NCBI RefSeq assembly: GCF_021028975.2
Contig: NC_059430.1
Span: 91,946,001 to 92,010,000, forward strand
From: Sphaerodactylus townsendi
Lineage: Eukaryota
DNA length: 64,000 bases
Direction: 5' to 3'
The translations under genes were made by a program, and so were the position numbers. Below, piece by piece: positions 90-59,500 of the stretch. Below the pieces are notes generated by a model. It saw nothing but the letters and a program-made list of their open reading frames with translations, did not search any database and was not told the DNA's origin. Each line of letters begins with the position of its first letter. The stretch's first letter is position 1.

Positions 90-128
90 GCCTAAGACAT
101 CTAGAAATAGTAGTTTATGGATGTCATA

Positions 129-27563: not shown

Positions 27564-27569
27564 TGGCAC

Positions 27570-32469: not shown

Positions 32470-32594
32470 CTAAAATATAATAGAAAAATGTATTAAGTTT
32501 TCACAAGGGGTTTAGAATTATGTGTACAGTCACTCATGGATTATTTTGCAAGGAGTCTGTTTTTCATGAGGGAGCATTTAAATATGCAACATCC

Positions 32595-36269: not shown

Positions 36270-36477
36270 CTGCACGCAGAGGAACTGAAGGATTTTGCAG
36301 GAACAGGCTTCTCTTGGGCTTTTCCCGCCATGAGGTCCCACAAGGAGGGGGCTTCCCTGCCCTTTGGAAATAAATCTGGGATGTGATCCTGACCTTGACT
36401 GAGAATATTGCTTTCATGACTGAAAGAACTGGGGCACACATTTTCTTGATTTTGTGGGGTATAGCTGCAACTGGGAC
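36270..36477 (-). CDS. LMNTD1: LMNTD1 exon (GPSCSYTP...SQGQDHIPDLFPKGRE...SSSAC)
   Basis: Acceptor ttttgcttgacag|, donor TGCAG|gtatgg. 208 nt, phase 1 to 2. GQDHIPDLF resembles the GEDYFLSLF motif I recall preceding the tail domain in human LMNTD1. Confidence 0.8.
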
Positions 36478-38431
36478 CTGTCAAGCAAAAGAGTAAAACA
36501 GAGGAGAGATGTAAGAAATTACTTTTCAAAAAACAGGTCTAATATTCAGAACCTTTTATGGAGATGATTTTGCATAACAGAACTTATTTTTGTTTTGTTA
36601 CACTGTTAAATGCAAAATGGTGCTCCCCAAGACAACTACGGCTATAAAATGAGACACAGCTGGCAAAATGAATATTTTGCTAGTGTCATGCAGATTTATT
36701 ACTTTGCTGGAATTACCTTTAGTAGCTAAACCATAATAAATTGGGCCATCAGTGGAATAGCTGTTACTATGAAATTGCTGGATGTGTTGAGAGTGTAGCA
36801 TCAGCCAAGAGCTGGTAACAAATCTATTGCGTCTTTTTTCATCTACAGAATGATTATGCTAATATCCCATAATAAGACTCTCTTCGTTTTTTCTTTCTTT
36901 CACAGTTCTCCCATAATAGGAGACTGCCTCTGGACCTTAGAGAGCGGGGACGTGTGTTTTGGCCAGAAAAAGTTTTGTTGTTGTTGTTGGAGACAACAAT
37001 CTGACTAGAACCACAGAGAACTGGTTGAGTCAGCAGTTTCCAGCCAGTTTCGTTTTCAGAATCAAACTTTGGACCCAGAACTGTGGACCCAGAATTTGGT
37101 TTCCAGAACCAAATTTTGGCCCCATAAGTCTGAATTTACTTTGTATGGTGACTCTGCCAGGGCTAGCCCAAGCCTTTGCATATGGAGAGTACATTCCAGT
37201 CTCTGATCTCTCTACTCCATTGTTCCCTCTAATCCCCTTCTAGATAACTTGCTCTAGTAACTATTAGGACAAATTTAACTTGATTCTTTATTAACATGCA
37301 TATGCAGTATGCAGTGATGAAAACAACAACAACCGTGTAACGTAAGATAGTGCCTCTAGGGACAGGTCTTGCTTTCCAAAATACAGCTGAAGTGTTGGCT
37401 CAGATTAAGTACTGAAGTTTGTTCTTCTAGGAATCACTTCATACACTATGATTTTCTCACAGAGATATTGTTTTACATAGAAAATGTTCATACATATCAT
37501 TTGTAGTTAAAGATCCCAGATAGGACAACTGGTTATATTCATGGTATGTCTTATCAGTAATTTTTAGCATGAAGTTGTCCTTTTTCACAGCTGCTGCATA
37601 CCCACTGGGGCAAAGCAACATACAGGTTGTTTGTACGTGAGAGCACTCAATCAGGTTGTTTCAGATCTGGAAAGGAGCCCAGATCTTAATGAGATCCCTG
37701 GCTGTTTTTCCACTGCGAAATTGTACTGTTGTTAGCACGGGAAATATTCTGGTGCGGTCGAGAGTTTTCCATGGCTCCCGGTGCCGCACCGTGGCAGATA
37801 AGCTCCCAGATCTACCACAGGGCATTTTGACCATGGAAAAAAGGCCCTTTGAGTATCTTCTGCCTAAAATGTTTGGGAACTGCAGACACGAAGTTCCCAG
37901 TGTGTGGTGTAATTTGACTCTCAGAAAAAGACTGAGTAATACCTCTGGTCCTGAATTTATATAGTTGACTATATCTTAATTGTGTCTTAGTTCTTCATCA
38001 TTTTGACCACAGGAGCAAAAATTCAGGGCCTCCTCTTCTCTCCTTCTGTTCTTTTCTTCCACCTGTCATATTTTTATCCCACCCTTACTCTAAAGAGCTC
38101 AGGGGGACATGTTTGGATTTCTCCACCTCCATTTTATTCTAACCCTGTGAAGTACATGAGGCTGAGATGGAGTGATTGGCCCAAGGGCACACAGTGAGCT
38201 TCTTGAGTGGGGATTTGAACCCAGAGCTTCACAATCCAGATACCAAAGCCATTGGCTCCCTGGTAGCTTTTTAATGTTCACTCATGTGACATTTCAGAGC
38301 CCAGTTCTAATAAAATTGTCATTTATTATTTTAATGAAAAGTTTTCTTTTAAGGGAAGTCTTCTAAATGGGTTTCCAGTAGTCTGAAAAAAAGAATGTTT
38401 ATAAAACCTTGTTGAGCTACCTGTAGCTTAC

Positions 38432-38616
38432 CTAAAATTTTATTTAGTGTAGAAAGGGATTTTTCAGAAGATCTGGCATCTCCATGGAACAGATTGGCTA
38501 TTGACTGGGATTCCATGAACCGTGAATAGATTACTTTCTCCGAAGGCTTTGATGAGATGGTTGGTTTGGATTCTGAGTTCTGCTGTAACTGGAATTGACA
38601 TTGTGTTGCCTCCATT
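38432..38616 (-). CDS. LMNTD1: LMNTD1 exon; probable first intact coding exon (MEATQCQFQ...LNKILG), ATG at 38615
   Basis: Acceptor catacag|A ATG, donor TTAG|gtaagc. 185 nt, phase 2 to 1, open, and in phase with the next exon. Confidence 0.7.
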
Positions 38617-40371
38617 CTGTATGGGCTTTAAAAACCACCATTGTAAAATTACATTTACTGACAATTCCAAATAATTAGTTTTCTGGTTGTGGCAATGCAT
38701 TTTGATTTTTTTCTCTTCAGCAACAAAAACATGAATAAAAACCACAGTAACAAATCAGATTCCTTGGCTCCCAGTATCCAGCATCTCTATATACATTTGG
38801 AATTGGGAAAGAGTGAATATGCCCAGTTAGCAAATGTTCATTGTATGGCCAGACAGGCTATTTCTTCTGCTGCTAAGAACCTTACCCCAAGTTGTTGTCC
38901 CAAGCAAGGGACATCGCACACCATTCCCAGCCAAGTCCAAACCAACCCCCTTCACTGGTAGGGTTGCCAGGCAGTGACTGCCAGCCAGCAGAAAGGTGGT
39001 GTGCAGTGTCATGGGAAACTTTGAAAAAAATAAAATAAAATAGGGAGCTTTATGCAGCTTCATATATTTGTGGGATGTGTCAAAGCATAGCTCTGGGGGT
39101 CACCAGAAACCCTAGAGTTTCTGGTAAGTTTAATGACTTGCATTAAAATGAATCCTCACCACCATTCCAAGGAGCAGCAAATAGGACCTGGGGGAAGTCA
39201 AGGAGAGGCTTGGTTTGGGCCTTGCCATGGCTAGCAGATGATGCCAGGCACTGGCTTACCATTCATCCATTCCTCCCAGCACAAAAAAAGGATATCTGTG
39301 AAATGTCTTAAAAAGAAACAAGTGCCACTTTTCACTCTACACAGAATAAGGTGACTAGGGGACATCTTTTAAAAAGGTGGCTAAGATTATCTTCTGTGTG
39401 TCTGCATAGCTATGAAGACTGTTCTTTGGGAAAAAATAGGAAAGCACCCTCCTCACTGTACCATTCCAAAGTTTGACTGGCTTGACCAAAGACCAACTGT
39501 TCCCCATCTCTGTCATTTAGGAATCATGACAACAGTTGGGGGCTGGATATGCTGAAATTGGTGAGGGAGAGGAGAAGGTTTCTATGCAGCAATTCTTAAG
39601 CTTTTTGCTGTCACACCTCCCTTAGGACAGATTTTATGAATCACAACTGCCATGAATCCAGCTTAAACTTTAGGCAAGGTGATTCTGCATTTTTAGGGCA
39701 TCTCTATATACATTTGGAATTGGGAAAGAATGAATCTCTATATACATTTCTGTCTCTCAGATCCATCCTAAAATATATACATTTCTGTCTCTCAGATCCA
39801 TCCATTTCTGTCTCTCAGATCCATCCTAAAAATGCAAATCCAGAGCCTAAAATTCAGACTCTGGGGTAAACTAAAAATGCATATTCACTGAAATGAACAT
39901 AAAAACATGCAATAAAACAGTTTTGTGGAAATAAATTTTAGGAATTTTGTGTATGTAAAATATGGATTAAAAAATTATTGTTGAGAGACAATTCATTCCT
40001 CCCTGGGAGTCTGTCTGTACCTCCCCTGGGGAGGTATACCCCAGAGATTAAGAACCCCAGGGCTAACCAGAGGAAGATTCATTGGAAAGGAGGTGGTGCA
40101 GACCGCACTGGGGGGAAGCCAAATTGTTTCACATTCCTTTTCACTGCTAGGGGATTCAGGGGGTTCTGAAGGTTCTGTAGAACCTGTTGATAAAATTTTC
40201 TTTTTCACTTTTTTAATACTTACAATATTTTAATTAAGTATTAATATTTTAATACTTAAAATTAAAAAGTGATATTAAAATATTTTAAATACTTTTTAGC
40301 AGTCATTATTTGAATCCCACCACCATCAGAACCTGTTAAAATTTGAATCCCACCACTGGAGGTATTCATAC

Positions 40372-40461
40372 GTCTAACCTCCTTGAGACTTGCTGGCTAG
40401 AATGTTGCACTTCTCTGAGACATCCCTGGCTCCTGCCTATGGAGCTGGAAGTTGAGACAGA
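40372..40461 (-). pseudogene. 90-nt symmetric (phase 2-2) pseudo-exon with two in-frame TAG codons
   Basis: Acceptor ttttttttaag|, donor AC|gtatga. Reads LSQLPAP*AGARDVSEKCNILASKSQGG* in the LMNTD1 frame. Confidence 0.45.
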
Positions 40462-41440
40462 CTTAAAAAAAAATAACAACACTTGCAGGTCTCTAAAGTG
40501 TGTTAATTGAAGCTCAGACATTAATCTATTGTGACTGACAATTAATTTTCTGTAATTCATGAAGCGATGCTATTTTTATGGCAAGATGTATGGAGTTGCA
40601 GGTAGGTAGAAGTAGGAAATGCTTTTGACAGGGTGCCTGGCTGTCCTCTGGAATCTTCGGGGTGTGTGTGTGTGTGTGCGGTGGGGGAGGTTGAGATCCA
40701 TGCTTTCCCTCAACATCTATCTGTTTTGTATTATTTAGTGTCTTCAATCTTTTCCTTCCCAACAATCTTTATAAAAAATAAAGTTATTGGAAGTGATATT
40801 TTTTCTAGTGTGGTCTATTATCTACTGGTGTGGTCTGCCCAATAACTGCAAACTTGACTTAATATTCTTTAGTGTAGTAACAATTATCCGTGTGAGAGAG
40901 ACAGAATGGAAACGTTTCAAATAATTACTCCTTCATGCTCACGGGGAACCCAAAATGGCTGACATCAGTCTCCTCTTTTCCGTACCATCCTCACAGTATT
41001 AGGCTGAGAATGTCTGCCCAAGGCCACTCAGTGAAGTTTCCCTGACAGAATAAGGATTCAAACTTCTGTCTCTCAGATCCATGTCTGACAATATTAAATA
41101 AAGAAATGGGAGCTAAAAATGATACTGAGAGAGGAAAACTGATCCCACATCAGATCCCACATTAAAATTCTGGGCTTTGGATATAGCATGTGAAAAAGCA
41201 GGCACACTGGGGCAGGCTGAAGGTCAGGAAGATAGAGGTGCCCAGTGTGAGGTTCCCAGACCACCATGCAGCTTTGATGTGGTGTGGTGGGGCTTATTTA
41301 ACAACAGGGGTGTGTCCATTCTTGGCAGGGTTTGGACCTGATGAATAATGAGAGGGATAGACAGCTTTATTTGTTTAGGATATCTGTGACAATGTGCCCT
41401 TTATTTTACAATACCAGTTTTTTTAACATGCCTGTTCTCA

Positions 41441-41603
41441 GGTATAGCCCAATCTCATCCTACTGTGGAAGCTAAGCATGGGTAGTACTTGGGGGGGGGG
41501 GGGTGGTGATGACCATCAAGGATCACTCTGCAGAGAAAAGCAATGGCAAACCACAGCTATTTCTTACTTGCTTTGAGAGCCCATAAGTTGCCTGTCACTT
41601 GAC
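41441..41603 (+). mobile_element. 5S rRNA-headed SINE, degraded third copy
   Basis: gaagctaagcatgggtagtacttgg ... gcaatggcaaaccac. Confidence 0.55.
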
Positions 41604-41861
41604 TGTACTTTAAGCAGACAGCATGCTTTGGAAGGAGAGCCTCTAAGACAATCATGACTATACTGACTTGCTGCTTATTGCAAAGTACCTTTTCTCCTAG
41701 AGTTACCAAATTTAAAACACTACCGCAGTTATTCTGAGGAATTTTGTGCAAGGGCAAGCACGCATTTGAAACCCTACAGGGAAACAAATCACTGGGGGAA
41801 AGAATCTGGAGCAGAAAAATGGCAAATGATTATCCTGCCCCATGCTATTGAGGTACTCCAA

Positions 41862-42047
41862 ATTGTCGAAGGCTTTCAAGGCTGGATTCAACTGGTTGTG
41901 GTGGGTTTTCAGGGCTGTGTGGCCGTGGTTTGGTAGGTTTTGTTCCTAAAGTTTCACCTGCATCTGTGGTTGGCATCTTCAGAGGTGTGTCTGTTACAGT
42001 GTGTTACACAGTGTATAACAGACTTCCCTCTGTGATACACCTCTGAA
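41862..42047 (-). mobile_element. Penelope pLTR fragment with hammerhead motif (41945-41985 minus) plus a truncated inverted piece
   Basis: Reverse complement reads cct-CTGAAGA-t-gccaac-cacagat-gcaggt-GAAActtt-agg. Plus-strand piece aacagacttccctctgtgatacacctctgaa at 42017-42047. Confidence 0.75.
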
Positions 42048-42314
42048 AACGTGCTTGGGGGAATGTTTTGGGAAGAGCAGGTTGCAAAGGTTCAGCAGAG
42101 TTGCAAACTGACATGATGTCAGGCAGGGAGATCGGGGGCAGGCGGCGGGGCAGGGACATCAGGCAGTTGGGCGGGAAAAATAAACTGCTCCTGCAGTGTT
42201 TGCACAGTAGCGAATTCAGTGTGGGATTTTTGAAAAGAACCATCAATTGCGAAAGTACAAAAGACAGCCTCAAAAGAAGCATGTAAGGAAACATCCTATA
42301 GATTATTCACTTAC

Positions 42315-42430
42315 CCATTTATATATCCACATGTGCGTATCAGGGAAGTAATTTCTTGTTGCAGGTTAGCATTTTTTTCCTGAATAGCATCTACAGCTTT
42401 TATCTTGGTTTGAAGGTGATCATATACTTC
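42315..42430 (-). CDS. Open exon encoding an IF/lamin coil-2B-like segment (EVYDHLQTKIKAVDAIQEKNANLQQEITSLIRTCGYING), upstream part of the LMNTD1 locus
   Basis: Strong acceptor tttcttttttaaaag|, donor GG|gtaagt. 116 nt, phase 0 to 2, in phase with exon 38616. Heptad pattern; LQQEITSL resembles lamin LDMEIHAY. Confidence 0.65.
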
Positions 42431-43021
42431 CTTTTAAAAAAGAAATTAAAAGATGAAGAAGGAAACTGAGTAGCTGAATGTCTGTGATTGGAATTTTATA
42501 CATTCATACATGGGGTTAATACATAGTGTGGATTGAATTAATTTGTAGAAGATATTGGCCTGTCCAGAGTTACTTAGAATTGTGAGCCCTCTCCCCCCCC
42601 CCCAAAAATATTTCTTTTTATTTTCCTGGACTAATTTATATTTTTTTCTTACTGCGCAGAAAGTTTTAAGTTGGTCCGCGGAGGGCAGGTCTACCGAACG
42701 CTTTTCAGTTGGAGAAAGATGGGTCTTCTAAATGGATAACATTCTCATATTTGTGTCTGTGTAGCTATGGGTGATAACTATATGTTGCTGGAATCGGAAG
42801 GACCAGTCTTGTAGATCTCATATTTGTATATCTTTGCAAGCCTGAACGTAGAGATGTGCAAGTTATATTTTGGCCAAGATGGCGACTGGATGGATAAAGA
42901 ACCATAAGGGGGTTGCAATTCCTGTTAGTCGCACATTCAAGTTGTGCCTGAAACCACTTAGATTTTTGTATTTTCCATTTTTTATATACTTTTTCCTCAT
43001 TCCCATTTTATAGCAGCTTAC

Positions 43022-43157
43022 TGAGCCATCTGGTTGAAATGAGCAGATTGCTGTTGGAACATCTCATCATCTGCCTTTACTTTGCTCAATAAAACTGTAT
43101 CTGATGTGATTATTCCTCCTGATGCTTCCCAGGCATGCTTGCTGCATTATTTTTTTT
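43022..43157 (-). pseudogene. Decayed rod-like exon (..LLSKVKADDEMFQQQSAHFNQMAQ)
   Basis: Donor CA|gtaagc. Coiled-coil-like translation in register with lamin coil 2B when joined to exon 42430. Frameshift and stop in the 5' part. Confidence 0.5.
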
Positions 43158-43957
43158 CTTATAGAACCCTTGGTTACAATTGACCATATGTTTAAATATG
43201 CACAAGGCAAAATTCTTCTGTGCACAGAACCTCAAATCAGAGTAAGAGTCTTGCGACATGCCAAACAATCTGCAGCTCTACTTATTTATGTAAAGCTTTA
43301 GTTAGCAATACGGATCTAAAAAATACCTCTTATGGAAACATGCTCTCCACTTAAGGATACATCATACAAAACCCTCATATTCATGCCAAGATGGTTCTCT
43401 GTTGGTTAAAAGGACAAGAAACAGGGGAGAGGTAAATTGCTCTTAATCATCTCCCATCTCAGTGATGGCTGTCACAAGTTACTTCAGGTTTGGCCATGCA
43501 AATACTTCTATTGTAGCCAGCAGAGGACAATTGGCCATCTCACACTTTGACAGGAAATGTGACACCTTGAGAGGGTAGAGATGTAGGGGTGCCAAATGCT
43601 ACATTATATATCTTCCTGAGAATAACAGGAAGAGAAGGATTCACCCTAAGGTAGGGGTCAAACAGAAGAGATAAGTTCCCACAATACTAGGGGTATGAGG
43701 TCCATTTCAGCTGGCTCCATCCAGAGATAATTTGAAGGAAGGAGATCCTCCATCTTGATGGTCCTATTACAACATGAAGCTAAAAAAGGCAGCCATCCTG
43801 GACAAAGGCTGATAGAATGCTATAACTTTCAGAGTAACGAACCTACCCTAGAATAACACCAGACAGGGTATGTTTAGAGGAGGGACAGAAGTCTTATGTA
43901 CTTTGCATCAACCTGTTGCTGTACAGAGTATATGTGTAATCATTTTCTTTATAATAA

Positions 43958-44340
43958 ACTAGCGGGCCCGGCAATGCATTGCTGTGGCTCAGTCTGGTGA
44001 AGTGGAAAAGAAAGAAAAGGGGAAATGAACAGTTCGAACATGTGTCATTGCACAATGCTTGTAAGGGAGGGGAGGGGCAAGGGGCCCCTCCCTCCCCTCC
44101 CTCGCTCCCATTCCCTTGCACGGCACCCCGCCCCATCCCTCCCTAACGTTCCCCTTCCTCTGCTAGGGTGGGTGGGCCATGTCCAGGTGGCGGACCCTGT
44201 CCATTTCACTCCCTTCCCTTGCAGGCAAATTACCTAGCTTAAAACACGCTGGGAGGCATGAGCTACATTGTGTTCAAATTTCAGAGCGTTTGGTCCAGCA
44301 AACCCCCAGACCCTCCCTCATTTTTATTACGTTGTATGTT
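43958..44340 (-). mobile_element. Possible non-autonomous Helitron-like element
   Basis: Minus-strand end is palindrome gcaatgcattgc followed by ...cccgCTAGt; no TIR or TSD seen. Confidence 0.5.
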
Positions 44341-45187
44341 GGAAGTTTGTTCTCCATAACCATGTTAAGCCCCACTTGAACATTTTAATAAAAAGGCACT
44401 GGGGGAGGAGAGGAGGTTGGTCAATAGATTGCGAGCTCTGTGGAGTATGCAAGTGCGGTAAGCTCTATCTGCAGTTATTAACTGGAGTGAGTAGGAGACA
44501 TGGGCACTAGGCACAGCCTATAAACAGCAACACAGACAGCAACCACAACTCCGAGTGCTAGGAGTATTGGCCTTCGTATTGAGAGATATTTTGAATGATC
44601 AGTTAGTGGCAGCATACATAACCAGAAAGAAGTGAAGAATCACACTTGGAGTTGGGTGGGCTGGGAGAGTGGTGCAGCATAGGGAAGAGACCTGGGATGG
44701 CCACTGAGTGTCTTGACCTCCAAGAGGACCCAAAGCCAAATAGTGATTGTGGGTCAGTTGGGCCATTCTCCAATATCAGTCATTACTGATGTAGTGGTTG
44801 CAGTGTTGGACTAGAAGCTGACAGACCCAGGTTCAAATCCCCACTCTGACATGAAACTTTAGATTCCCACTGGGGAGAAAAGAGGTATATAAACAAAATA
44901 AAAAATTATTTTTGTTTCCCAAAGAGAAGCTTGTATATGCATAGTATCAGATAACAAAGTGGTTGTTTTCTGGACATCTGAAAAAACAGTTTCTTCCCCC
45001 AATGTCTTCTTGTGTAAGATGTTGATGGGCCCTCTAGCCTTTTGAAAAGAGGATTTTTGAGTGAAAGAAGCTTTGTTTGCATTTCACTGTTGTACTAGCC
45101 ATATTGTAGCATCAACACCATTGATAAAGTCATTGGTATTGCAAGCTCAATACAGTCATTCATCAATATGTGTACACATGCACATAC

Positions 45188-45293
45188 TTTTTTTTGTGAA
45201 AGATGGCTTTCTTGGTCAATTTTAGAAATTGGCATTCATGGAAGTGAAGCATCTCTCTTCCATACACATGTCTCAAGATGTTGAAATAAATAT
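45188..45293 (-). pseudogene. Decayed exon (YLFQHLETCVWKRDASLP*MPISKIDQESHLSQKK)
   Basis: Acceptor ctattttcag|, donor AAA|gtatgt. 106 nt, phase 2 to 0, one TGA (possibly from CGA). Confidence 0.45.
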
Positions 45294-45673
45294 CTGAAAA
45301 TAGTGTCATTTCTATTTGGACTGGTAATTCTGTATTTGGACTGTACCATTCTGTACAGATAGTAGATCTCATGATAAAAGTACTCATTCAGGTGAAAGGA
45401 GGCATGTTTGAATGTTCAATTGTGTGTGCACACACACTCCACTGAACACAGAAAACAAGTATGTCAGGGAGAAGGCTAGAATCCTTCTCCCTGACATCTA
45501 GTTAATTGTATGTAGAAAATATTTTACAAAATATAACAGGCCATTTAACCATGTTATGTGGGCCACCCCACATATGTTGGCTACTAACACACTTGTACAA
45601 TGTTTAATCAGATTAAGGCTACATTATGAATATAAGGAGGGTTTTCATATATCTGATCCAGAGAAAACCTCAC

Positions 45674-45776
45674 ATCATCCCAAATTTTTCTTCACAAAAA
45701 TCCATTGCAGTAAGTCAGTGATGTGCTGTTCATATCACCACATGTGTTACTATATTTACTCATAAGGAAGATGATT
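45674..45776 (-). pseudogene. Decayed rod-like exon (YEQHITDLLQ)
   Basis: Acceptor ttttttatgttcag|, donor AT|gtgagg. YEQHITDLLQ resembles lamin FESRLADALQ. Stops in every frame. Confidence 0.4.
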
Positions 45777-45933
45777 CTGAACATAAAAAATCGCCCTCCA
45801 ATGTTATACACAAAAAAGTTTTTTAGTATTGGAAATAACTGGAACTTGTATGCAAATTTACAATGATTCCCTTTTTATTTTGATGGCATATCTGGAAAAA
45901 TCCTAGTCTTGCATTTGAATGAATACTCTATAC

Positions 45934-46217
45934 CAGGGGTAGGGAACCTTTAACACTCAGAGCCATTTGGACCCATTTTCCGTGGGAAAAGAAAACACTT
46001 GGAGCCACAAATAATTTTTGACATTTAAAATAAAGATAACACTGTATATATTGGGTTTTTTTCCTTTTACTCCGCTCATTCTGAGAAGCGCATGGATGCG
46101 TCTGCCCTGCTGCCTGCAGGGCGGGCAAGGACGGGGCCAGCGGCTCGGCTCGTGGAGCCACAGTGCAAGGGCAGAAGAGCCGCATGCGGCTCTTGAGCCG
46201 CAGGTTCCCTACCCCTG
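45934..46217. mobile_element. Young hAT MITE
   Basis: Perfect 16-bp TIR caggggtagggaacct and perfect 8-bp TSD ctctatac. Confidence 0.93.
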
Positions 46218-46796
46218 CTCTATACGAAAAAAACCCATATTATATATAAATCTAACAGTAGGCGAGAAATCTACTAGAATATCACACTTTGGGGCAAAAC
46301 TGAGGGAAAGCACTTAGTTAACCACGCAAACCTGGCAGCTGGATGTGGGGGTTTGTTTCCAGGGTGTACTTTTCATTGCAGTTCTTGGCATGTAAAATGA
46401 TTTTGTTCCTCTGTGAGGGTGGTAAGTGATGTTCTTGTTTGGACTACAATTTGTATAGATGTCAGAAAATCTGTGCCTCTGAGAACATGCTCTTTAACCT
46501 ACTGAGCAGAGAAATATGAATGAAAGCAGGAACAATCCTTTCTATATGATTTCAATTGTCAGGGAGATGAGGCTTGTTCTAGGTCAGAGAGAGAGGAGCT
46601 ATTTGTTTGAGTTGGTGACGCAGAATAGCACAGATGATCATAGGGCTATTTGTGTGTATGTGTGCCATCACGTCACAGCTGACTTTGGGCGACCCCGTGG
46701 AGCATGTCAGCATACATGATGACGTATGAAGATACAGAACAAAACACAGAAGATCAATGCAACACACAGGATATCAATATTAAAATAGAAAGGTAA

Positions 46797-47130
46797 ACTG
46801 GGGTGCTGTGTGGTTTCCAGGCTGTATGGCCGTGTTCTAGCAGCATTCTCTCCTGACATTTTGCTTTGCATCTGTGGCTGGCATCTTCAGAGAATCTGAT
46901 AGTAGGAAAGCAAGTGGAGTATATATACCTGTTGGAGTATCCAGAATGGGGGAAAGAACCATTGTCTGTTAACAAGTAAAAGGTGCAATTAGCAAGCTAG
47001 ATTTACATGTGTTGTGTGGGATCCACCCATTAGCATGTGAGTTAACAATGAAGATAGCAAGGTCAATAGGTGAGGTCATCTGAATAGAAGTAGCCTGGCC
47101 TTTGTTCCCTTTGATTGTTTACTGATTCAG
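46797..47130 (-). mobile_element. Penelope 3' fragment with degenerate hammerhead motif (~46852-46893)
   Basis: Reverse complement is similar to 1310-1465 and 5761-5853. Confidence 0.75.
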
Positions 47131-48574
47131 GGAAACTTCACACATTACTGATTTCCTACACAGAAATAAAACTGCAAGGTTATGACCCTGGTGTGTATTC
47201 TGAGGTATGGCCTGCCAGAATCAGGGTTCCCAATGTATTGCTTGAGGTAGGAATGGTTGGGTTTTGTCCTTACTCTAGTGCAAAGGCAGGGCAATGGCTG
47301 ATTCTGCACAGCACAAATAAGACATCCTGAGGATGGGGAAAACAGGCATTTCGGGGAGGAACTCTGCAGGTTCCCCCCCCCCCCCCAAGACATCCTCAGG
47401 GCACTTTATCTCCCCTTGAGCCATCTTTTTTGAAGTCGCTAAATTGTGGACTTTTTTCCCTGATGTTGTCTGCAAGTCACCTCCTGCTTACTGTGTGGAG
47501 CTCAGGAGCTGAGAAAATGTCTTACGTTTCCCACCCATTAAAACTGTCTGATCAGTTTCCTCTCCAACTGACAACTGACATTTTATGGAGCTGCGGGGGT
47601 TTCTCACCCCTGCAGCTTTTTGTATAAGGTTTTCCTGGGATGTTTGCTTTGCAGGCTTCCCTGCTGGGCACCTTCATCCTGCCTATTCCAGCAATATATA
47701 GTTTTCATGATGTGATGGCAGTGGTGTAGGTAGGGTGTGTGGAGTGGCTGAAACCCTGGGTGCCACTTCCTAAGCCCCCCTCTCAACTGCACCCCGGTCC
47801 TGAATTTCTATTCAGGGCAGGGGCACAGTTGAACGCTGGTGAGTGGGGCTGACCCTGCCCCTGTTCTCCATGGGGAGGTCAGGAGCAGCAAGGGCCCATT
47901 TGAGTTTGGCCTCAGCCAGATATGGGTCAAGATTTTATCTGCAGGCTTCCAGACTCAGTAGGGAGGTTGTCGAACTTCTTACTTTTTAGTGTTGGTTCTA
48001 CCACCCAAGCGCCTCCTCTAGTCAATGTCAAGGGGTTGTGGAGCAAACAGTAAAAAATAGAAGCTCTCCAGTCCCCGTTCTCAGTCTGAGCCAGTCCTCA
48101 GTCTGGCTCAAATGAGCCCTCACTGCTTCTGACCTCCATGTGGAGATTGGGGGCCTGATCACTGACACTCAACTGCACCCCCTCCCTGCAACTCCCCAAG
48201 TCAAGGAGTTTGCAGCCGGAACGTGTGTGGGTGCCCCTGGGGGATGGGACATGTGTGTGTGGGTGCCCCTGGGGATGGGACACGCAAGACACACTCATAT
48301 GCTTCCCAGTGCACAGTAGGAACAGCTGCAGTGTAAGTGTGTTGAAGGAAAAAAGAATGCCTGGCTTCTCTCAGCCTCTGATCAGAGTCTTGTATTCACT
48401 TTCAAGCACAGGAAGAAGCCGGGAGGGGGGGCAGGGGGGAGGAAGACTCCTGTTCTCCTCTGCTTCTTCCCAAGGCCATGGCAGATGACAGGCTTTGCTG
48501 CAGCTGCCTGTTGGCTGTGCCTTCCAGGCCCAGTTCCTCCTCAAACCTTAAAAACACTAGACATTAATTCAGTA

Positions 48575-50605
48575 ATTCCTTTATAATTTGATTTCCAGGG
48601 CACCCTTCCTTTTTACAGGCTCAGGGTGGCGTACAACAATAAGCCGCCAGATTAAAATATGTGACAATACATTATAAAATGCTCCATAAAATCAATTTCT
48701 CACAAACTATGTGCAACAAATTAAAGAAGAGGGGGAGGAGGTAGAATAAAAGTAGACAGGAGAAGAAGGAGAGAGAGAGAAAGGGAGGCCATCTAAGATG
48801 GGATGTCGTTGCTCCCCTCGACTGAAGGCTTGGCATAACAGTCAGTTATCCAGGTGGATAACAAGTTGTTATCCATAGAGGGAAGTATTCTCTTGGGCAT
48901 GTACTTGGAGAGATAGTCTCACAAGTATGAAAGTCTCAGACCTCTCATGGCATTCAAAGTTAGCACCAAAACCTTGAACTTGCTATTCCACTAGTAACCA
49001 ATGCAGGTGGCGGAGCACTGGAGGATGTGCTCCTGCCATGGTGTCGTGGTAAGGAGCCATGCAGCTGCATTCTGAATCTGAATCAGCTGGAGTTTCCAAT
49101 TCAGCCTCAAGGGCAATCCAACATACAGTGAGTAACAATAACCTAATCTAGAGGTGACCATTGCATGGATCACTATAGCTAGGCCAAGGTGCTACAAGTA
49201 GGGGGTGAGTAATCTAGTCTGGCATAGATGATAAAACACCAGCCCTGTCACATTTGTGACTTGAACCTCCATAGATAAGGAATCATCAAGTATCACCCAA
49301 GCTCTTGATCGTTAGTGAAGATGTTAGCTGCACTCAGTCAAGAGCTGGAAGACAACCAGTCCCTGCTAAGTCTCCCTGACCCAGCCACAGGACTAGATTT
49401 AGTTTCAGCCAGCTCTGTTTCAAGAGCAGTGAAGAGCCAAGAGCAGTTGAAGAACCAAGAGCAGTGGCTAAGAGCAGGTGCACTCTGATCTGGAGGAACT
49501 GGGTTTGATTCCCTGCTCTGCCACTTGAGCTGTGGAGGCTTACCTGGGGAATTCAGATTAGCCTGTACACTCCCACACACGCCAGCTGGGTGACCTTGGG
49601 CTAGTCACAGCTCTACGGAGCTCTCTCAGCCCCACTCACCCCACAAGGTGTTTGTTGTGAGGGGGGAAGGGCAAGGAGATTGTAAGCCCCTTTGAGTCTC
49701 CTACAGGAGAGAAAGGGGGGATATAAATCCAAACTCTTCTTCTTCTTCTTCTTAACCATGGTCTCCAGAAAATTGGCCAAAATATTCAGCGCAGAGTTTG
49801 GCCAACCACCCCTCAAGAGGTAAAGCCAGGTGTCATCAGTGTACTGGTCACATCCCAGTCCAAAGCACCAAACCAACTGGGCAAGAGGGCTCATATAGAT
49901 GTTAAGCAGCATTAGATAGAGGATAGCCCCTGGTAGGATGCCACATCTTAATGAATATCATGGTAATGTCCTCTCCCATACTGTTCCTCTTTGTCTCCAG
50001 CCCCAAAGAAATTAGATCAGCCACTGTAAGGCAGTCACATGTATTCCATCACCCGCAAAACTGTAAGCCAATAGATCATAATTAATTGTGTTGAATGCTG
50101 CTGTCAAATCAAGCAACAACAGCAGCCCAACCCTCAACATGACCAGAGCTATCTCTGTCCTGTGGCCAGAATCAAAGCCAGATTGAAGTGGGTCCACCAG
50201 CCCCAATTGTTCTCCAGAAAGTCCTGAAGTTGTTCTGCAGCTGCTTTCTCAATTACATTACCCAAGAATAAAAGACACTGTGTGATAGTTGGATGGATGA
50301 AGAGGCTCCAAAGATGATTTCTTCAGTAGCAGCCTTATCATTGTTCCTTTCAACCCTTCTGTAAAGACCCCTGAAGACAGAGACAGATTGATTAGTATGT
50401 CTCTCGGGGGCCTGCATGCCATATCCACTGGCTTTCACCAGCCAAGATAGGCATAGATCAAGGGGCAAGTAGTAGGTCTCACAGCTGCCAGGATCCTGTC
50501 AACATCAGACTGGGAGAGACAGCTGAACTGGTCCAAAGTCAGAGCCGAAGATGGCCAAGGAACCTCTAGTTCACTAACTGAATCAAAATTGGTGGGGAGG
50601 TTTTG
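48575..50605 (-). mobile_element. L2-clade LINE, degraded RT region and 3' end
   Basis: LVDPLQSGF..HRTEIAL, LLLLDLTAAFNTI, QYTDDT, VTSRLGYCYSLYVGLP..QNAAA. Confidence 0.88.
49458..49752 (+). mobile_element. Same young SINE, inserted into an L2; (ctt)n tail
   Basis: Highly similar to 20010-20312. Confidence 0.9.
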
Positions 50606-52225
50606 ATGGAGGAACAAGACTTTAGCTACAAAAAAGCTTGCAAATGCCTCACACTAATAGCCAAATTTCTAATATTTGAGGAATTTCTAATATTTGAGAA
50701 AAATACATTCAGTATTTTCTCTTTTTTTTCCTGGACAGTCTATGAAAATACTAGACTGTTTGGGACAATATCATACATTTGGCAACCGTAGGCCTAATTC
50801 TTCACTTGTTTCCATTTTTACATATTCTAAAGAAATGTGTACCAGGTCACAGCCTGAAATCCAAGGAGAAATCAGGGAACAGGACTGGCATGCCAATACT
50901 AACATCATTTCTGATAAAAATTGAAAGTGACATTTTTAGTGTTCTAATGGTGGTGGACAAGTCACAGCTGACTTATGCCAAAGAACAGAGATGCTGGGTG
51001 GTCTATAACAGAAGTGCTGGCATCACTAACCAAACAGTATATACAGTGGTATGCAATACTAAGTACTGAAAGCATGTACCTATTTCTATGTATGCAGGTT
51101 TTCCACATACAAAGGGCTCAAGGTGCCACACAAATTCAAAACCCTCAGCAGGAAAACAAACATTCAGGTCTTCCTAAAAGGACAAAATTGTCTTTTAACT
51201 AACTGGGGCAGTTTTCGTTGGGCCACTGGCAGCTTTGACAGGAGCGCTTAGCTTGGACTTTGGAAATGATGATAATGAATGTAGGCTTATGTGTTGGGCC
51301 TACGCCTAGTGTTATCATTGTTGCTGCAACCTAGGTTGAAGTCCCCGTGGTGCTGGAAGCAATTTGGCTCTGCTTTCATTTTGGTCTGTTTTATGGTCCC
51401 AACCTGCCCCTGGGGCTGAAAAATCTCCTCTAGGATACTGGTTGTGGTGCTTTAGCAGGAAAGGTCTCTCTTCTTATCATCTAGTTTTCTTGATTGTGAG
51501 GACTGGGCTCTTTTAAGAGGTGGACTGGAAGAAATGACTAGCTTGTGTTAGGGAGGAATGTGACCAAACTGAGGAACTGCAAGAGTGTGTGTGTGTGTGT
51601 AGGGGGGGGGGGGGTTCTGTGAAATTGAGTCCTCCTGGAAAGAAACCAGGGCAAAATGTTTGTTGGTAGGCAGCAGCTTACTGTATAATTCACAAAGCAG
51701 AGAACAACACACAGAAGGCCAGGGACAAGGAGGTGAGTTTTCTGGAGAGGTCTCAGTGTACCCCCTGCAGATGTCCACAAAATGTTCTAGCCCACAGAAG
51801 ATATTACTAGGTAGGGTTGCTAACCTCCAGGTGTCACCCAGAGATCTCTCAGCATTACAGCTGATCTCTAGACTATGGCAATATACCCCTTAGAGGACCA
51901 TCTTGACCCCAAACTCTGTCCTCCACATAATCTACTCCCTAATCTGCAGGAAATTCCCAACCAGGAACTGGCAACCCCATTACTAGCCCATATTCCTGCG
52001 ATAGTCATTTGTGATCCACCAATGCCCTAAATTGCTAGCTGTCTTTAGCCTGGAAAAGCTTTCTTGCTTGGGTGCCCCAAGGTGAGTCTCATTTGATGTC
52101 AGGCCAAGTGGTTGTTGATGAAGCTGCTTTAGCATCAGACCAGAATGAATGAAAACACCTCCCACCTAGAAGACTAAAAGGAGGCAATTTGCACAGTTAC
52201 CAGGAAGTCAGTCAATGGAACTTAC

Positions 52226-52450
52226 ACCTAAGTAAATATGCTGAATGGAGTGAAAATTCCATACAGCTTTAGTTCTGATATCAACACAGCAGGCTCTCCA
52301 TTATTATCTTCGAAAAGTCTACTTCAGATTCCCTGGAAGCAATTAGATAGTTACTATCATCTTCTTCTGAAGCTTCTGAAGTCTGCTTGGGTGTTGTTAG
52401 GTGTGTATTATTTGCACCCATTCATTAATTTGCTAAATGAGTTTACCTCC
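52226..52450 (-). pseudogene. Decayed exon resembling lamin exon 1 (coil 1A/1B start)
   Basis: Donor GT|gtaagt. With frameshifts it reads *QINEW-ANNTHL...ASEEDDSNYLIASRESEVDF-RR, compared with lamin QELNDRLAVYID...[26 protein letters not shown]. Confidence 0.4.
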
Positions 52451-54617
52451 CAGGTGGTAACACCAAAAAGAAGGAGGCAGTCAATAAAAACCCTGGGCTC
52501 CGATAGCAGAAGTGGGAGCTGCCTGTCTGGTGGGAGACAAAATGGGTTGCAATGAAATGGCTAATTGCTGCTATCTGAGCCAGGGGCCAAGAAGCAGGGA
52601 GTGCCTGGCAGGAGGCCAGCAACACCAGCCAAAGGTTTGCTGCTGCCTTGGGAGGGGAAAGGAGCTTTTAAGGTAGAAGTGGACTACAGGAGGAACTTCA
52701 GTGATACTCCCTGCTGCGTTCTGTACGTATAGTATTATAAGATGGGTAGGCCTCCCCACACTCCTCCAACATTTGTCAGTAGAAGAAACTCTGGTAATCC
52801 CAAGAAATGTTGAGATATTTTGTCTGAGAAGGAAATGTGTCTGCATCTATTGGCTTTGAATTTCATTTAGATCAAATTCTGGTGGCAACCAGGGCATAAG
52901 CAAATGTCTGAAATGTCTCTAGTTTTATCTACATTCTTCAAATTTCCCTCTGAACTTTCCAATGGTTTTACCTAAGATTGACACCACCCCCACCCCCAGG
53001 CACACTTGGTTCAAGTTTCTCTTTGGGAAAACATTTTGGCAGCAACTCTTAATTCTGGTGAGGAATTATGATGCTCAGCTGGAAGAACTCCAAAGTATTT
53101 TTGCTGCAGACATGAGTGTTAGAACTACTGGAGCAGTAAAGGTCTCATGAAGTTTTTTGTTTATAGTGGCTACACTAAAACAGAATTATAATTTAATAGG
53201 AAATGTAGTTTTCCCCACCTGCTTGCAACTTAAGAGTAGATCTGTTGGCTCAGACCAGCCATCCATCTATCTCAGCATTCAGTTTTCAGCCATGGCCAGT
53301 TGTGGAAGCTCATACATAGTGCTTGCTAGCAATAGTTCTTGCCTGTTGTCCGCTTCATGTCATCCTCCTCTCATCCTGTTTGGCTATCATGTTGATAGCC
53401 TATCCTTCATAAACTTATCCAACTTCCTGGTAAATCCATTGGAGCCATGGACACCACCAGATCATGTGGCAGGGAATTTCACAGGTCAGCTACCATTGTG
53501 TGAATTAGTTGGATATTGGTGGTGGGGTTTGAAATCACAATGGTAATGTCCAATGAAATATTTCATGCTTCTTCTGGCCCTCCTTCACTATTGAGTGCTG
53601 TTGTCCACCATTGCTGTAGTGAGCAGGACTCTTGCATTGTTCTTCAGTGGACAGAGAAAAGGATGGGTCATACTAAGGTTAGGTTGCTTTCAATTTCCTC
53701 AGAAATTTTAAAGGAAGGGGCCACTCTGGATAGCAAATTGCTCCTCACACTGCTCATTCTGACCTTTCCTAGTGATATAAATTGAGCATTTATAGGGTTG
53801 TGTTCTCCTAGCTGCAGCAGGCAGTTTTGATGCCCTCATCCATCTTCAGCTGATTATAATGTAGTGCAATTGTTGTGGCAAACTACACCACTGATTTACA
53901 GAGAGCCTTGCGGCAGATTGTAACATTCCATAGAAGTTAATTATGCTCAATCATAACAGGCCCAAGGACATGTCTGTGGATAGCCACACAAGAGCAGAAG
54001 GCTTTGGGGCCACCAGTCAGAGATGTGTCTGGCAAATCCTCCCCTAATCAATTTGCTAAAGCCAAGTGCAATTAAAATAGTTTCTGACAAAGCATTTTAC
54101 AGAGTACTAAGTAATATTTTTGCTTATACTTGTATTTAGCATCTTTGCAAAAATAAACTGTTTCTCTTTCACTGCTATTAGTGTAAATGCACAGCTAAGC
54201 ATGATGGCTGACACTGTATCATGATGTGAAACATTTAAAGCGTGTAAGTGTGGGTTTATTGTACATCCTGGAGATCCATGTTAGGATACAAACACAGAAC
54301 AAAAATGTATTGTCGAAGGCTTGCTTTAGGTAAGCAAACTCTGTCTCTTACAGCTCCAAATGGTCCAGAATGCAGTCCTGACAGGGACCCCATGGCAGGC
54401 ACACATACAACCTGTGCTCCACCAGCTCCACTGGCTCCAGGAGGATACTGGATCAGATTCAAAGTACTTGTACTGCAAGCCTAAACACTGGGACCCGCAT
54501 ACCTCTCTCCTGGTATGTTCTCCGAACAGCACTTAGATCTGCAATAGTAATTTACTGGTCATCCCTGACATGAAGGAAGGGAAGGAGTAGTCCTGTCAGG
54601 TAAACTTCAGAGATTCT

Positions 54618-54799
54618 CAGAGGCGTAGCTCCAAGGGGACGGGGGGGATGCACCCCTGTAGGAGTGTGGCAAGGGCATTCCAGGGGCATGGTGGGGGCAT
54701 TCTGGGGTGGGGTGGGGGTGAGACGGGGGTGTTCCAGGGCGGGATGGGGTAGAGGATGCACCAGTGCACCGGGCGCTTTCCCTCCTTGCTACACCTCTG
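54618..54799. mobile_element. hAT MITE
   Basis: TIRs cagaggcgtagc / gctacacctctg; TSD gagattct/gagattcc. Confidence 0.85.
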
Positions 54800-55310
54800 G
54801 AGATTCCCCTTCCAACATCTTCCTCCAGCCAAGTCCCCTCCCTCTGCCTAGCATTTTGATTCTCATGACTGAGGCCTGGCTGGCAGGCAATGATGTGTCT
54901 GTGCACCCTGCACATAATCTGAAGCCAATTTAATGGCATATTCTCTGCTCCAGGTGGGAGGCTGCTCTTTCATTTGCTCTTTCTCTCTACCTGACCTTTT
55001 TTGAAGGGCCTCCAATTTTTAAGTATTAACACATATAGATTTCATCCTCAAGGCAATGTGTTTATTAAGAAATATATCTCATAGTATCCAATGTTCTTAG
55101 GATTGCAGTTCTGCCATCTGGTAGGTCAGATTCATAATCCATTTTAAAAATTCTTCCTAGCTGTGCATATGGCCCAATACATCAGAGAGCTAGTGGATAG
55201 GGAGGTAGAGGTCTCTTCTTTGCCATGATCATAATGAAAATCCCCAACTAATAGCAGCCAGAGGGGGTTGGATTGGATGGGAAAGGGTAGAGTTAGGGCC
55301 CTAAAACTGC

Positions 55311-56045
55311 TATGCAAAGGTGATAGTATAGTATTTCAGGTGGGGGTTTTCAGTCCAGGGAGTGATTCACATTTGCATTCCCTGAAGGGTGTGATTCACA
55401 TTTGCATTCAGTCCAGGGAGTGATTCACATTTGCATTCCCTGCAGCAGCAGCAGTATTGGTGAATGCAAATCCTGTGTTGGGTGGAGTCCATTGTTCATG
55501 AATTTAGCATGCCCTTGGCCTTTGAAAAACCCCACCTGCAATACTATACTATCATACCTTTGCATAACAAGTTCCACCCAAACACTTATTGATTGGTTCC
55601 CCACCTGGGGACATGACAATTTATTTATTTATTTATTTATTTATTTTATTGTTTCAATTTTTATACCGCCCGATCCCCGAAGGGCCTCCACTAAAACATT
55701 CCCTTCTCACTGGACACAGTAACAGACTTCCCTCTGTGATACACCTCTGAAGATGCCAGCCACAGATGCAGGTGAAACGTTAGGGACAAGATCCACCAGA
55801 CCACGGCCGCACAGCCTGGAACCCCACCCCCCCACAACCAATTGAATCCAGCCGTGAGAGTCTTCAACAATGCATGCTAAGTTCATGGACAATGGACTCC
55901 ACTCAGACACAGGATTTGCATTCACCAATACTGCTGCTGCTGCAGGGAATGCAAATGTGACTAACAATGTAAATGGACTGATAACCCCACCTGCAATACA
56001 ATGCACTTTTGAATAGCAAGTTCCACCCAAACACTTACTGATTGA
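55311..56045. repeat. Complex inverted/direct repeat patchwork around a Penelope pLTR
   Basis: 55311-55352 inverted vs 55522-55566; 55426-55511 inverted vs 55872-55960; 55528-55594 direct vs 55983-56044; three tandem gtgattcacatttgcattc units. Confidence 0.8.
55744..55784 (+). ncRNA. Minimal type I hammerhead ribozyme motif, best-preserved copy (within pLTR fragment ~55705-55871)
   Basis: Stem I cct/agg; core CTGAAGA and GAAA intact; stem II gccagc/gcaggt; loop-less palindromic stem III ACGT; GUU cleavage triplet. Confidence 0.7.
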
Positions 56046-57452
56046 TTACTATGGAACATGATCTCATCAGACAGAACTACACAAGAGGACCTCCAAGAGT
56101 CGATGAGAAAAATGACCCTGCCAGAGGTGTTATACATTTCAGTTGTCCCTAATGACTTGCTTATGAAAACAGCAGATCTTGAAACAGCCTAGGAAGTCTG
56201 GGTTAAATTAAAGAAGGTGCTAGGAAGGAAGTAATCAAGAATAATAATGTCTCTCCAGCATGTCTCTCCATTTAAACCAAATGCTCAGCTTGGTTGACTA
56301 CCTTAAAACAGCAGGAAAACAGATTGTTAATGAGGACATATTATTATTAATTTCATTTCCCAGGAGTTATGAAAATTTGGTTGCTATAATACAGAGCAGG
56401 GAAAAACTACTTTTGTCAGAAGTTATTGAAGAATTAAAGGAGGAGCACATTAGAAGAGAATTCCTTCAAGGCACAAATAGTCTCAAAGCCTTGAAAACAT
56501 AAGATAAAAAGGAACTAAAGTGTTACGCCTATGGAAGAATGGGTCGCCTTGCAAATGAATGCAGGCAACAAGAGCTATATAATGGTGCTGGCCAGCAAGC
56601 AGTAAACAGCCACAAAACTCAGGGGAGCATCTCCGGTTGTAAACAGCTACACAGGAACCACAGATAAACAATGTCTGTAAAAGAAAACTTTCATATTAAA
56701 ACCAGGACGGATAAAAATCAAACATGTGGATCCATGATAGCAGTTGTACAACTCAATTATGTGGAGATAAAAATTTATTTGACATGTTGGATGAGAATAA
56801 AAGAGAAATTTTGCATGTAGCAGATGATCACTCTAAAGAGGCAGTGAGAATGGGGCAAGTTATCATCAAGTGCTTGTTACCAGGAAGGCCTGTAAGAGAG
56901 ATTATAATTACAAACTGCCTTTTTCTCCCCTCGACTGCAAACAACTTGATTTCAGTGAATGGTTTAACGGATAAAGGGAATGATTACAAAAAACGCTTTA
57001 AAAAGGGGCAGAACTGATTGCACAGGGCACAAGAAATGATGGGCTCTACCATCTAGAAAGAGAATCTTGTTCAGAGATGTACTCATAGACAGTGCATGAA
57101 TTTATGGCATAGACATTATGGACATAGAGGTGTTAATGCAATTAAGCAACTTGAAATCCAGAATGTAACTAAGAATGTGCAAATTGTTAGATGCCCCCTG
57201 GAGCAAAAATGTGAAATGTGCATTAAAGCAAAGGGCGTGAGACCAAGTTTTTCAGTGCTTTGGAGGAAAAGCAGAACTAAGTATCCCCTGGAATTTATAA
57301 TACATAGTGGTGTCTGAGGACCTTTTAGAATGCAAACTCTATCTGGGAACCAATATTTGCTAATCTTTATAGGTGATTTTTCAAGATATACCGTGACCTC
57401 CTTCATTAGACAGAAAAGCCAAGTACTGGAAAACTTAAGGCTTATATTGCCT
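56045..57452 (+). mobile_element. Ty1/copia gag-pol remnant (gag, Zn knuckle, protease, integrase N-terminus); no LTR seen
   Basis: HLNQMLSLVDYLKTAG..LLISFPRSYE; knuckle CYAYGRMGRLANEC; protease WIHDSSCTTQLC; LWHRHYGH..CEMCIKAK; IHSGV*GPF..YLLIFIGDFSRY. The protease-then-integrase order is copia-specific. Confidence 0.9.
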
Positions 57453-58891
57453 TAATTTCCTCCTCCTCCTTGGAAGTGTCTGCTCGTTCTTTCCCTATCT
57501 AGCAAGGTAGATGAAGGCTATCCCCGTCTGTCAGCTTTCCTATCTGAAATGCAGCTCCCTAATAAACATTTAACTTTATCTTTAATCAGTGAGAATGCCG
57601 CTTCTCTGCACAGCTAGCAATATGCCAACAATCTGCCTGAGGCTTGGAAATTATGCGGGGGGGGGGGGGGGGGGAACACACAACAAATTCTCCATGCCAT
57701 GCTCAACTTCCTCAGTATAGCATGGATATCTCTCCCTCCCCTCTTCCTCTGGTTCCCAATTTCACGTGAGCTTGGGAAATGGGAGCTGGGGGAGGGAAAT
57801 GTAAAAAACTTAAAAAGATTAATGTTATTTTGCTTCTTCGGCCCCAGATGTATTTGGCTTTTCGAATACACCTTTTAAAAAAAAATCAGTAAAAAAACAA
57901 AACCATAAAAGCTAATAGGGATTTTTTTTTAGGCTTTTCTGTGATTCAGGTTCACCAAATCATCAAGCTTACACCAAAGTCGCAACACAGAGGCCGGCAA
58001 TGGCCAACCATCTCTGTTCATCTCTTACCTTGAAAACCCTTTGGCATTGTCATAGGTTGGCCACACCTTGACACTTTCTTCCTCCACAGGCTCTTCCTAT
58101 TCTTTATTAATTTACAATGCAACCCTCCCCACATTTCTGGCTTTATGCCCAGATACTTGGAAATAGAACACTCTTGAGTTTTATTACCCCAAGGCAAGAT
58201 TGTCTCCATCAGATGTGTATGAGCTCAAAATACAACTCTCTTAGTCAGTGTGTTTACAATATAGAGGGACAGTAGAAGGAGATTTATGATGTTAATATAA
58301 AATTCCAGCCCTCCTGTGCAAATCCACATGCTGTCAAACTGGGAGGTAGCACAAATGGGGAACGCAACCTGTTTGAGTTGTGAAATGTATCCCAGAAAAT
58401 ACATTCCCTCTTGAGTTTGCTTTTTAAGAAAAGTAATAAATTTCAAGACTCTGTAGATTTGGTAATGAGCATGAATGTGTGCTAGGAATGTATGTCTTAT
58501 TAGCTCAAAAACCAGAGGGGAAATGCCTATCTCCTCTTCAGTCTTGTTCAGGAGGAACACTCCTGCTTTTTCAGCATGACATTCTGTTGATAAAAGATGC
58601 ATAGGAAATGACAAAAGAAGGCAAATTTGCCTGCAGCCATGTGCAGTTCAGCCTCAATAATCTTAGGTACCTAAACTTACATCACATGAGTAAAAGAGCA
58701 TTTCCAGTTGTGCAAGGAGACAGATTTCTGCTGATCCCCTTCCTCACTGCAGCACCCTGTGCTATCCCCAAGACCCCATCCCGCAGGAATTGTTTTTGGG
58801 AGGCTATGGCAAAGGAAAGGTAAACTGGCTGCAAGGTGTGTACACAGAGCTCAGGGTTGAAGCATTCAAAATATGTTCAAGATGTTCACTT

Positions 58892-59500
58892 TGTTACCGC
58901 TGCTGCTCGGGTAACAATAAATGATTTCAGCTCAGCAACATATTGAGGCGTAGGAAGCTGGTGTTCTTAAAAGCAAAGTATTTTATTCGGAGGTGATGGT
59001 CACAGCTCGGGCAGGAGAATTGCGCCCTTGCAACCAAGCGCAATAACTTTTATTCACAAACATCAAAGGGGCAAAGGGGCAGGTAAAGGGGGAGGTAAGG
59101 GGGCAGGTCCCTTACCGAACACCAATAAAGAAACATCAATACAAAAGAAAGATACAGTTACAACTTTTGTGAATGGGATCACGAAATCCCGCTGTCAAGC
59201 ATCCTCCCGTGAGACTTCGCAATGGTGCTGAAAGGAGAGCGGAGAAAGTCCATTCAGAGAATCTGGGTGGGCTCGCTACCACACCCAGTTATCTACGTTA
59301 TCAGATGGCTGTTTCCTTCGGTTATGACCTGAGGCTCCCGCGCCTCAGTTCAGCAACAAAGGAGAGTTCAAACTGTCCAATGGTGATCCCGACACGTCTT
59401 TCAATGGCTGGGACCTCTAGGTGCTGCCATCAGTTTTAATTTGCAAAACCAAAGGGAGTCTTTGTCTTCGCTAAGGAGTTGGCAGGGTGTTGGTCTAAGC
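58892..59500 (-). mobile_element. Probable ERV/LTR-derived sequence; right boundary uncertain
   Basis: Begins tgttacc; minus-strand AATAAA near 58985; CpG-rich. A possible end gttaca at 59162 has matching actt flanks. Confidence 0.45.

Follow-up and report, generated by a model that had tools for sequence, protein, structure and literature searches.

Does the gecko gene LMNTD1 still carry, upstream of the exons for its lamin tail domain (LTD), the decaying exons of an ancestral intermediate filament (IF) rod? The question is raised by a stretch of 64,000 nucleotides from Sphaerodactylus townsendi (assembly GCF_021028975.2, contig NC_059430.1, positions 91,946,001 to 92,010,000), which is referred to here as the window, is numbered from its first letter and, judging by its sequence matches, is the LMNTD1 locus, with the gene on the minus strand. 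An earlier interpretation made from the letters alone, called here the sequence-only reading, had picked out seven splice-bounded segments between 40372 and 52450, had aligned them in order with the rod of lamin A, and had proposed that this lineage keeps the tail half of a rod-plus-tail gene while its rod decays. Our analysis leads to a different answer. With a probability of about 0.9, the region is part of intron 1, coding exon 2 and intron 2 of an annotated LMNTD1 of the cilin/nematocilin type that keeps a short, two-exon rod remnant, and six of the segments are chance intronic stretches. The seventh, 42315-42430, is an intact, functional and already annotated coding exon rather than a fossil.

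Exon 2 is intact and joined in phase to exon 3

A residue-by-residue mapping of the NCBI-annotated LMNTD1 (XP_048355381.1 / XP_048355382.1; isoform X1 has 520 amino acids and isoform X2 has 493) places its residues 47-478, with 100% identity, in eight exons of the window. The two that bear on the question are these:

42315..42430, minus strand: coding exon 2, residues 47-85 (mapped 42430..42314), C-terminal end of coil 2B, with a phase-0 intron upstream and a phase-2 intron downstream
38430..38625, minus strand: coding exon 3, residues 85/86-150 (86-150 mapped 38624..38430), conserved with its flanks in Heteronotia

The split glycine codon takes GG from the end of exon 2 and its third base, C, from position 38625, where exon 3 begins, so that the phase-2 intron that had been noticed after this segment is real. 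Exon 3 starts directly after the AG at 38626-38627, and in the annotated protein the reading frame runs on into it from exon 2. The ATG at 38615, from which the open part of the gene had been thought to begin, is an internal methionine of exon 3 and not a start codon, because exon 3 (38625-38430) receives its reading frame through the in-phase splice from exon 2.

The coding character of exon 2 is also visible in its conservation. It is 70-77% identical to its counterparts in four geckos (Eublepharis, Euleptes, Paroedura and Heteronotia), its conservation extends from squamates to turtles, amphibians and lungfish, and it is matched with an independent E-value (iE) of 2e-19 by an LMNTD1 rod profile built from 26 species with Sphaerodactylus left out. 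Furthermore, the exon is under constraint at the nucleotide level. Relative to Heteronotia it has diverged by 9.5% without a single insertion or deletion, its alignable flanks have diverged by 19-21% with insertions and deletions, and the rest of the intron cannot be aligned. Similarly, in contigs from four DNA runs (three samples from two organisms, compared over 40300-46299), exon 2 carries no variant and the flanking intron carries scattered ones.

Exon 2 encodes the end of the rod

In the family alignment, exon 2, which encodes the last ~39 residues of coil 2B, lies opposite the final ~40 helical residues of those LMNTD1 proteins that have a rod. It is, on this alignment, a true homologue of the end of the IF rod. 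The gapless coil 2B alignment that had been drawn against lamin therefore divides into two parts of different standing: the second half (42315-42430) is sound, with EITSL placed opposite lamin EIHAY in the same register as in the family alignment, but the first half (43022-43157) scores as noise.

The relationship of exon 2 to the lamin rod is visible only through the LMNTD1 family profile. Pfam Filament (PF00038; gathering cut-off 40) is passed by the LMNTD1 of axolotl (residues 18-376, 45.7 bits) and lungfish (residues 21-385, 60.2 bits); the S. townsendi protein has no Filament match, and the LTD is the sole Pfam match of the whole protein. Exon 2 alone finds no lamin in the PDB at E<=10.

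Of an ancestral-type rod before the LTD, S. townsendi retains only a predicted helix of ~80 residues. AlphaFold2, run with an alignment of 22 sequences, gives one continuous helix over residues 4-83, with a predicted local distance difference test score (pLDDT) of 94-99 over residues 21-80. Exon 1, which must lie beyond 64000, and exon 2 together encode this predicted single alpha-helix, corresponding to the C-terminal part of coil 2B, and the helix is followed by a linker and then by the LTD. If it behaves as the literature on its relatives suggests, the protein would act as a truncated cilin, one of the lamin-tail-domain proteins that occur in ciliated cells and spermatids. The residual helix may conceivably still mediate pairing as a coiled coil; a homodimer prediction for residues 1-95 scored 0.20 against a mark of 0.32, which gives no verdict, and it is not used here either way.

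Intron 1 lies between two coil-2B exons

Residues 1-46 of LMNTD1 are not encoded in the window, in which neither an exact 6-mer nor a tblastn match to them was found, and the first exons of the four other geckos likewise have no tblastn match there. The annotated gene spans 175 kb, of which exons 2-9 in the window cover only 39 kb. Since exon 1 is absent from the window and the gene is so long, exon 1 is placed beyond 64000. In the proteins of turtles and amphibians, the part aligned with residues 1-46 is the middle of coil 2B, and in Heteronotia a distance of 18 kb separates the two coil-2B exons. The following part of the window is therefore bracketed by rod exons on both sides:

42431..64000, minus strand: 3' portion of intron 1, which has a coil-2B exon on each side

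Because this intron sits between two coil-2B exons, a collinear series of fossils running from coil 1A to coil 2B is impossible there, and the only place for relics of coils 1A, 1B and 2A would be upstream of exon 1. In Heteronotia binoei, the rod profile finds no coil 1A-2A relic in the 11.6 kb upstream of LMNTD1 exon 1 (positions 1-11700 of that locus). If rod fossils exist at all, they are further upstream than 11.6 kb in Heteronotia or have decayed past recognition.

The six other segments

The remaining segments are chance AG/GT-bounded stretches of unique intronic DNA, unrelated to the rod:

43022..43157, minus strand: claimed first half of coil 2B; intronic, that part of coil 2B being encoded by the intact exon 1; polymorphic at 43128
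45188..45293, minus strand: claimed rod segment; intronic, with an insertion variant at 45187, in the supposed donor, in two runs
45674..45776, minus strand: claimed rod segment with YEQHITDLLQ; intronic, with variants at 45682 and 45696 in organism B
46370..46500, minus strand: claimed weak candidate with VKEHVLRGTD; intronic, with no AG at its boundary and a weak donor, GTACAC
52226..52450, minus strand: claimed coil 1A segment; intronic, with its 5' edge preceded by CTG, not AG, and in need of frame changes
40372..40461, minus strand: claimed to follow the rod; lies in intron 2, is part of no gecko gene model and has a stop in the frame (phase 2) set by exon 2

As observations, most of what had been reported about these segments is accurate. 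Every peptide that was quoted can be read on the minus strand at its listed position; all seven segments are followed by GT, although an AG stands directly before only five of the seven (it is missing at 52450 and at 46500); and all but one, the open 42315-42430, carry stops or frameshifts. What does not hold is the interpretation that they follow the lamin A rod in order from coil 1A: the six have no rod homology, and they lie in the intron between the coil-2B exons or, for 40372-40461, in intron 2. Splice-like edges of this kind are common. In the 21.6 kb upstream of exon 2, we counted 243 AG..GT segments of 90-230 nucleotides on the minus strand and 284 on the plus strand, requiring a pyrimidine-rich YAG acceptor and a GTRNG donor.

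Similarity searches recovered exon 2 and none of the others. Among 3191 stop-free six-frame pieces, exon 2 is the sole match of the rod profile, the other segments having E>3, and reading stops through as X leaves the result for the six unchanged. Piece 43021-43146 reaches 2.5 bits (iE 15-18), no better than plus-strand pieces, and a PDB search with 43024-43146 finds no lamin, its best matches being bacterial lectins that we take as chance. Pfam, searched at E<=10 with nine open pieces, gives no Filament match, in a search in which the single LTD exon is also unmatched. In tblastn, 27 orthologous proteins show no match above noise at the six segments. Finally, when the Heteronotia locus is compared by blastn, exons 2, 3 and 4 align together with flanking sequence, as do several interspersed repeats, but none of the six does. 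A fossil exon would be expected in collinear position and with residual similarity to orthologous exons of species that keep them; the segments of intron 1 fall between exon 1 and exon 2, and residual similarity was found in none of the six.

The segments also vary as introns do. Contigs of the four runs reproduce the window across the single-copy parts of 40300-46299 (42052-44003 and 44819-45916), and in organism B the segments hold 3 variants in 345 nucleotides, compared with ~30 in the 3.3 kb around them. The variants at 43128, 45682 and 45696, with frames read against positions, change codons and remove no stop.

A transposon origin was considered for all seven segments and is ruled out within the window, where a self-similarity search places none of them in a shared repeat. 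Segment 46370-46500 lies ~70 nucleotides beyond a very high-copy repeat (45900-46299, possibly further).

Weighing the explanations

The idea that the six stop-bearing segments are decayed ancestral rod exons, from coil 1A to coil 2B, beside a functional tail half has some facts on its side: the segments exist, they are unique DNA with mostly splice-like edges, and the family did lose rod exons in squamates. It is nevertheless very unlikely and largely refuted, as it would require fossils between two surviving coil-2B exons, out of collinear order, with a 'first half of coil 2B' whose place is already filled by the intact exon 1. Nor do the segments rise above noise against the 26-species rod profile, with or without stop read-through, and the absence of a Pfam Filament match and of conservation in Heteronotia, together with the hundreds of equivalent chance segments, points the same way. 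We would allow slightly more, while still thinking it improbable, for the view that some of them, chiefly 40372-40461 and 45674-45776, serve LMNTD1 as alternative, non-coding or poison exons that are missing from the annotation and have nothing to do with the rod. These have a polypyrimidine tract, an AG and a GTRNG-type donor, LMNTD1 has several isoforms, and the run index lists DNA but no RNA for S. townsendi; on the other hand, they are not conserved in Heteronotia, they are used in none of five gecko gene models, and inclusion of 40372-40461 in the phase of exon 2 leads to a stop. Scarcely any weight can be given to the suggestion that the stops are assembly errors in a gecko with an intact long rod, for which we found no supporting evidence. 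The stops are not assembly errors, because the contigs of all four runs agree at every stop over 40300-46299 and because the variants remove none, and a short N-terminus is common to the annotated protein and the proteins of four other geckos.

Several points weigh against the reading that we prefer, an annotated LMNTD1 with a two-exon rod remnant and chance segments in its introns. The splicing of exons 1, 2 and 3 is taken from the NCBI gene model and from conservation, and exon 1 is placed beyond the window indirectly, from its absence here and the length of the gene. A pseudo-exon may have decayed beyond recognition, so similarity searches alone are insufficient and it is the positional argument that decides. 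Moreover, the comparison of rod and tail exons by the ratio of nonsynonymous to synonymous divergence (dN/dS), which the sequence-only reading had recommended and which we made pairwise and against Heteronotia only, gives 2.96 for exon 2 (~10 nonsynonymous and 1 synonymous change in 39 codons) versus 0.16 for the LTD exon. With too few synonymous changes, the exon 2 value is uninformative alone and does not demonstrate purifying selection at the amino-acid level, and it is unlikely that exon 2 is constrained as tightly as the LTD exon. The value is compatible with a partial relaxation of the encoded protein sequence while synonymous sites stay constrained, a combination that may be expected where a small exon is flanked by very long introns.

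Comparison with known systems

The descent of LMNTD1 from a rod-plus-tail IF gene and its shortening in lizards are correct and already published. Nematocilins were described as lamin-derived proteins with a rod, an Ig-type domain and a tail, and the same ancestral gene was found to have been truncated at its N-terminus independently in mammals and fish (Kollmar, 2015; PMC4448529). A preprint on cilin (10.1101/2025.08.21.671432) identifies the human 'nematocilin' as LMNTD1, reports full rods in the turtle and frog proteins, a helical segment of 'roughly half the length' of these in lizard LMNTD1, loss of the helical segment in birds and most mammals, and a rodless LMNTD2, and places expression in ciliated cells and spermatids. 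The sequence-only reading was thus right that the gene descends from a full-length ancestor and that most of the rod has been lost; its further claims, that only the tail half is kept and that decaying rod exons remain, fail against the predicted 80-residue helix and the intronic nature of the segments.

The lizard protein of the cilin preprint and the gecko protein are products of the same gene, although the preprint gives its helical part as roughly half, whereas models of gecko, Lacerta, Varanus and Hemicordylus have ~75-85 helical residues. Annotated helical N-termini, which depend on the gene models, measure ~330 residues in turtles, ~140 in iguanians and ~75-85 in geckos, Lacerta, Varanus and Hemicordylus. 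With the rod-bearing LMNTD1/nematocilin/cilin proteins of axolotl, caecilian, lungfish and turtles, the gecko protein has in common the LTD and the end of coil 2B, but it is without their coils 1A, 1B and 2A, of which no relic is detectable in the window. Human LMNTD1 has, like the gecko protein, an orthologous LTD; its helix, like that of birds, is described as wholly lost, while the gecko keeps the predicted helix of 80 residues. In lamin A/C, coil 2B is distantly homologous to gecko exon 2 by way of the IF family, and the lamin tail is matched directly by the LTD exon.

It is tempting to go further and to regard squamate LMNTD1 as a natural series of stepwise IF truncation (~330 residues in turtles, ~140 in iguanians, ~80 in geckos) in which a minimal coil-2B stub plus LTD is maintained, with true rod-exon relics perhaps upstream of exon 1 and with the Sphaerodactylus stub perhaps under relaxed amino-acid constraint. 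We consider this extension doubtful. The importance of the present result is small, as it corrects the record for a gene that is already annotated and whose evolutionary history is in print: gecko LMNTD1 does not begin at ATG 38615, is not rodless, and keeps two coil-2B exons. Even so, the graded rod lengths of reptiles could help studies of how much coiled coil cilin needs.

Gene identity and exon map

The family was named by a search with the best match of the lamin-tail exon, which brought up LMNTD1 proteins from geckos, other squamates, turtles, crocodilians, birds, amphibians, lungfish and paddlefish. Orthology to annotated vertebrate LMNTD1 is borne out by the ranked matches, which are the LMNTD1 of geckos, other squamates, turtles, birds and amphibians. 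Pfam LTD (PF00932) matches S. townsendi LMNTD1 over residues 219-328 with 48.9 bits, above the gathering cut-off of 34.3, and the LTD exon 5 matches the lamin A/C tail in the PDB (E 0.004) and has 113 relatives in a representative library. Downstream of exon 3, the exons in the window are as follows:

36272..36475, minus strand: coding exon 4, residues 151-218, linker before the LTD; limits by residue mapping, +/-3 nucleotides
32283..32469, minus strand: coding exon 5, residues 219-282 (mapped 32471..32280), first part of the LTD; splice sites read
30258..30374, minus strand: coding exon 6, residues 283-321, remainder of the LTD
27569..27778, minus strand: coding exon 7, residues 322-391
19734..19904, minus strand: coding exon 8, residues 392-448
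3053..3142, minus strand: coding exon 9, residues 449-478
4584-4745 and 18546-18789: N runs in the window

The C-terminal ends of isoforms X1 and X2 lie outside the window. A UniRef entry for S. townsendi (276 amino acids) starts at an internal methionine of exon 3 (38516) and runs past the exon 7 donor into the intron (27551-27778); it resembles a submitter's gene model that was cut short more than it does an isoform.

Repeats and insertions in the window

The intron between exons 7 and 8 contains a GC-rich block of ~6.5 kb (21012-27557; GC 0.57-0.60, CpG observed/expected 0.5-0.8), which starts ~11 nucleotides after the exon 7 donor. In the Heteronotia locus the sequences on either side of it adjoin each other (82213-82473 and 82468-82529, overlapping by 6 nucleotides), so that the block was either gained by insertion in the Sphaerodactylus lineage or lost by deletion in Heteronotia. 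Within it are direct repeats, both as copies spaced ~820-840 nucleotides apart (26278/27125 and 26642/27463) and as a pair at 21065/26808, which suggests ends like those of long terminal repeats. The long open stretches of the block, on both strands, have no Pfam match.

An interspersed repeat of ~135 nucleotides occurs at 62868-63002, 49618-49753 and 20181-20314, with copies 75-88% alike. Because the Heteronotia LMNTD1 locus carries at least five copies too, it is an old gecko family resembling a short interspersed nuclear element. Very high-copy repeats are indicated at 41500-42300, 43900-44500 and 45900-46300, where k-mer depth in the four DNA runs is 1,000 to 100,000 times the single-copy level; one of these ends ~15-270 nucleotides downstream of exon 2, as resolved by depth bins of 200 nucleotides. 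On the minus strand at 49100-50650 there are open stretches that by eye resemble a degraded reverse transcriptase of a long interspersed nuclear element, with no Pfam match at E<=0.01. Two parts of this region, 49104-49203 and 49868-49921, align to Heteronotia intron 1 (28079-28567).

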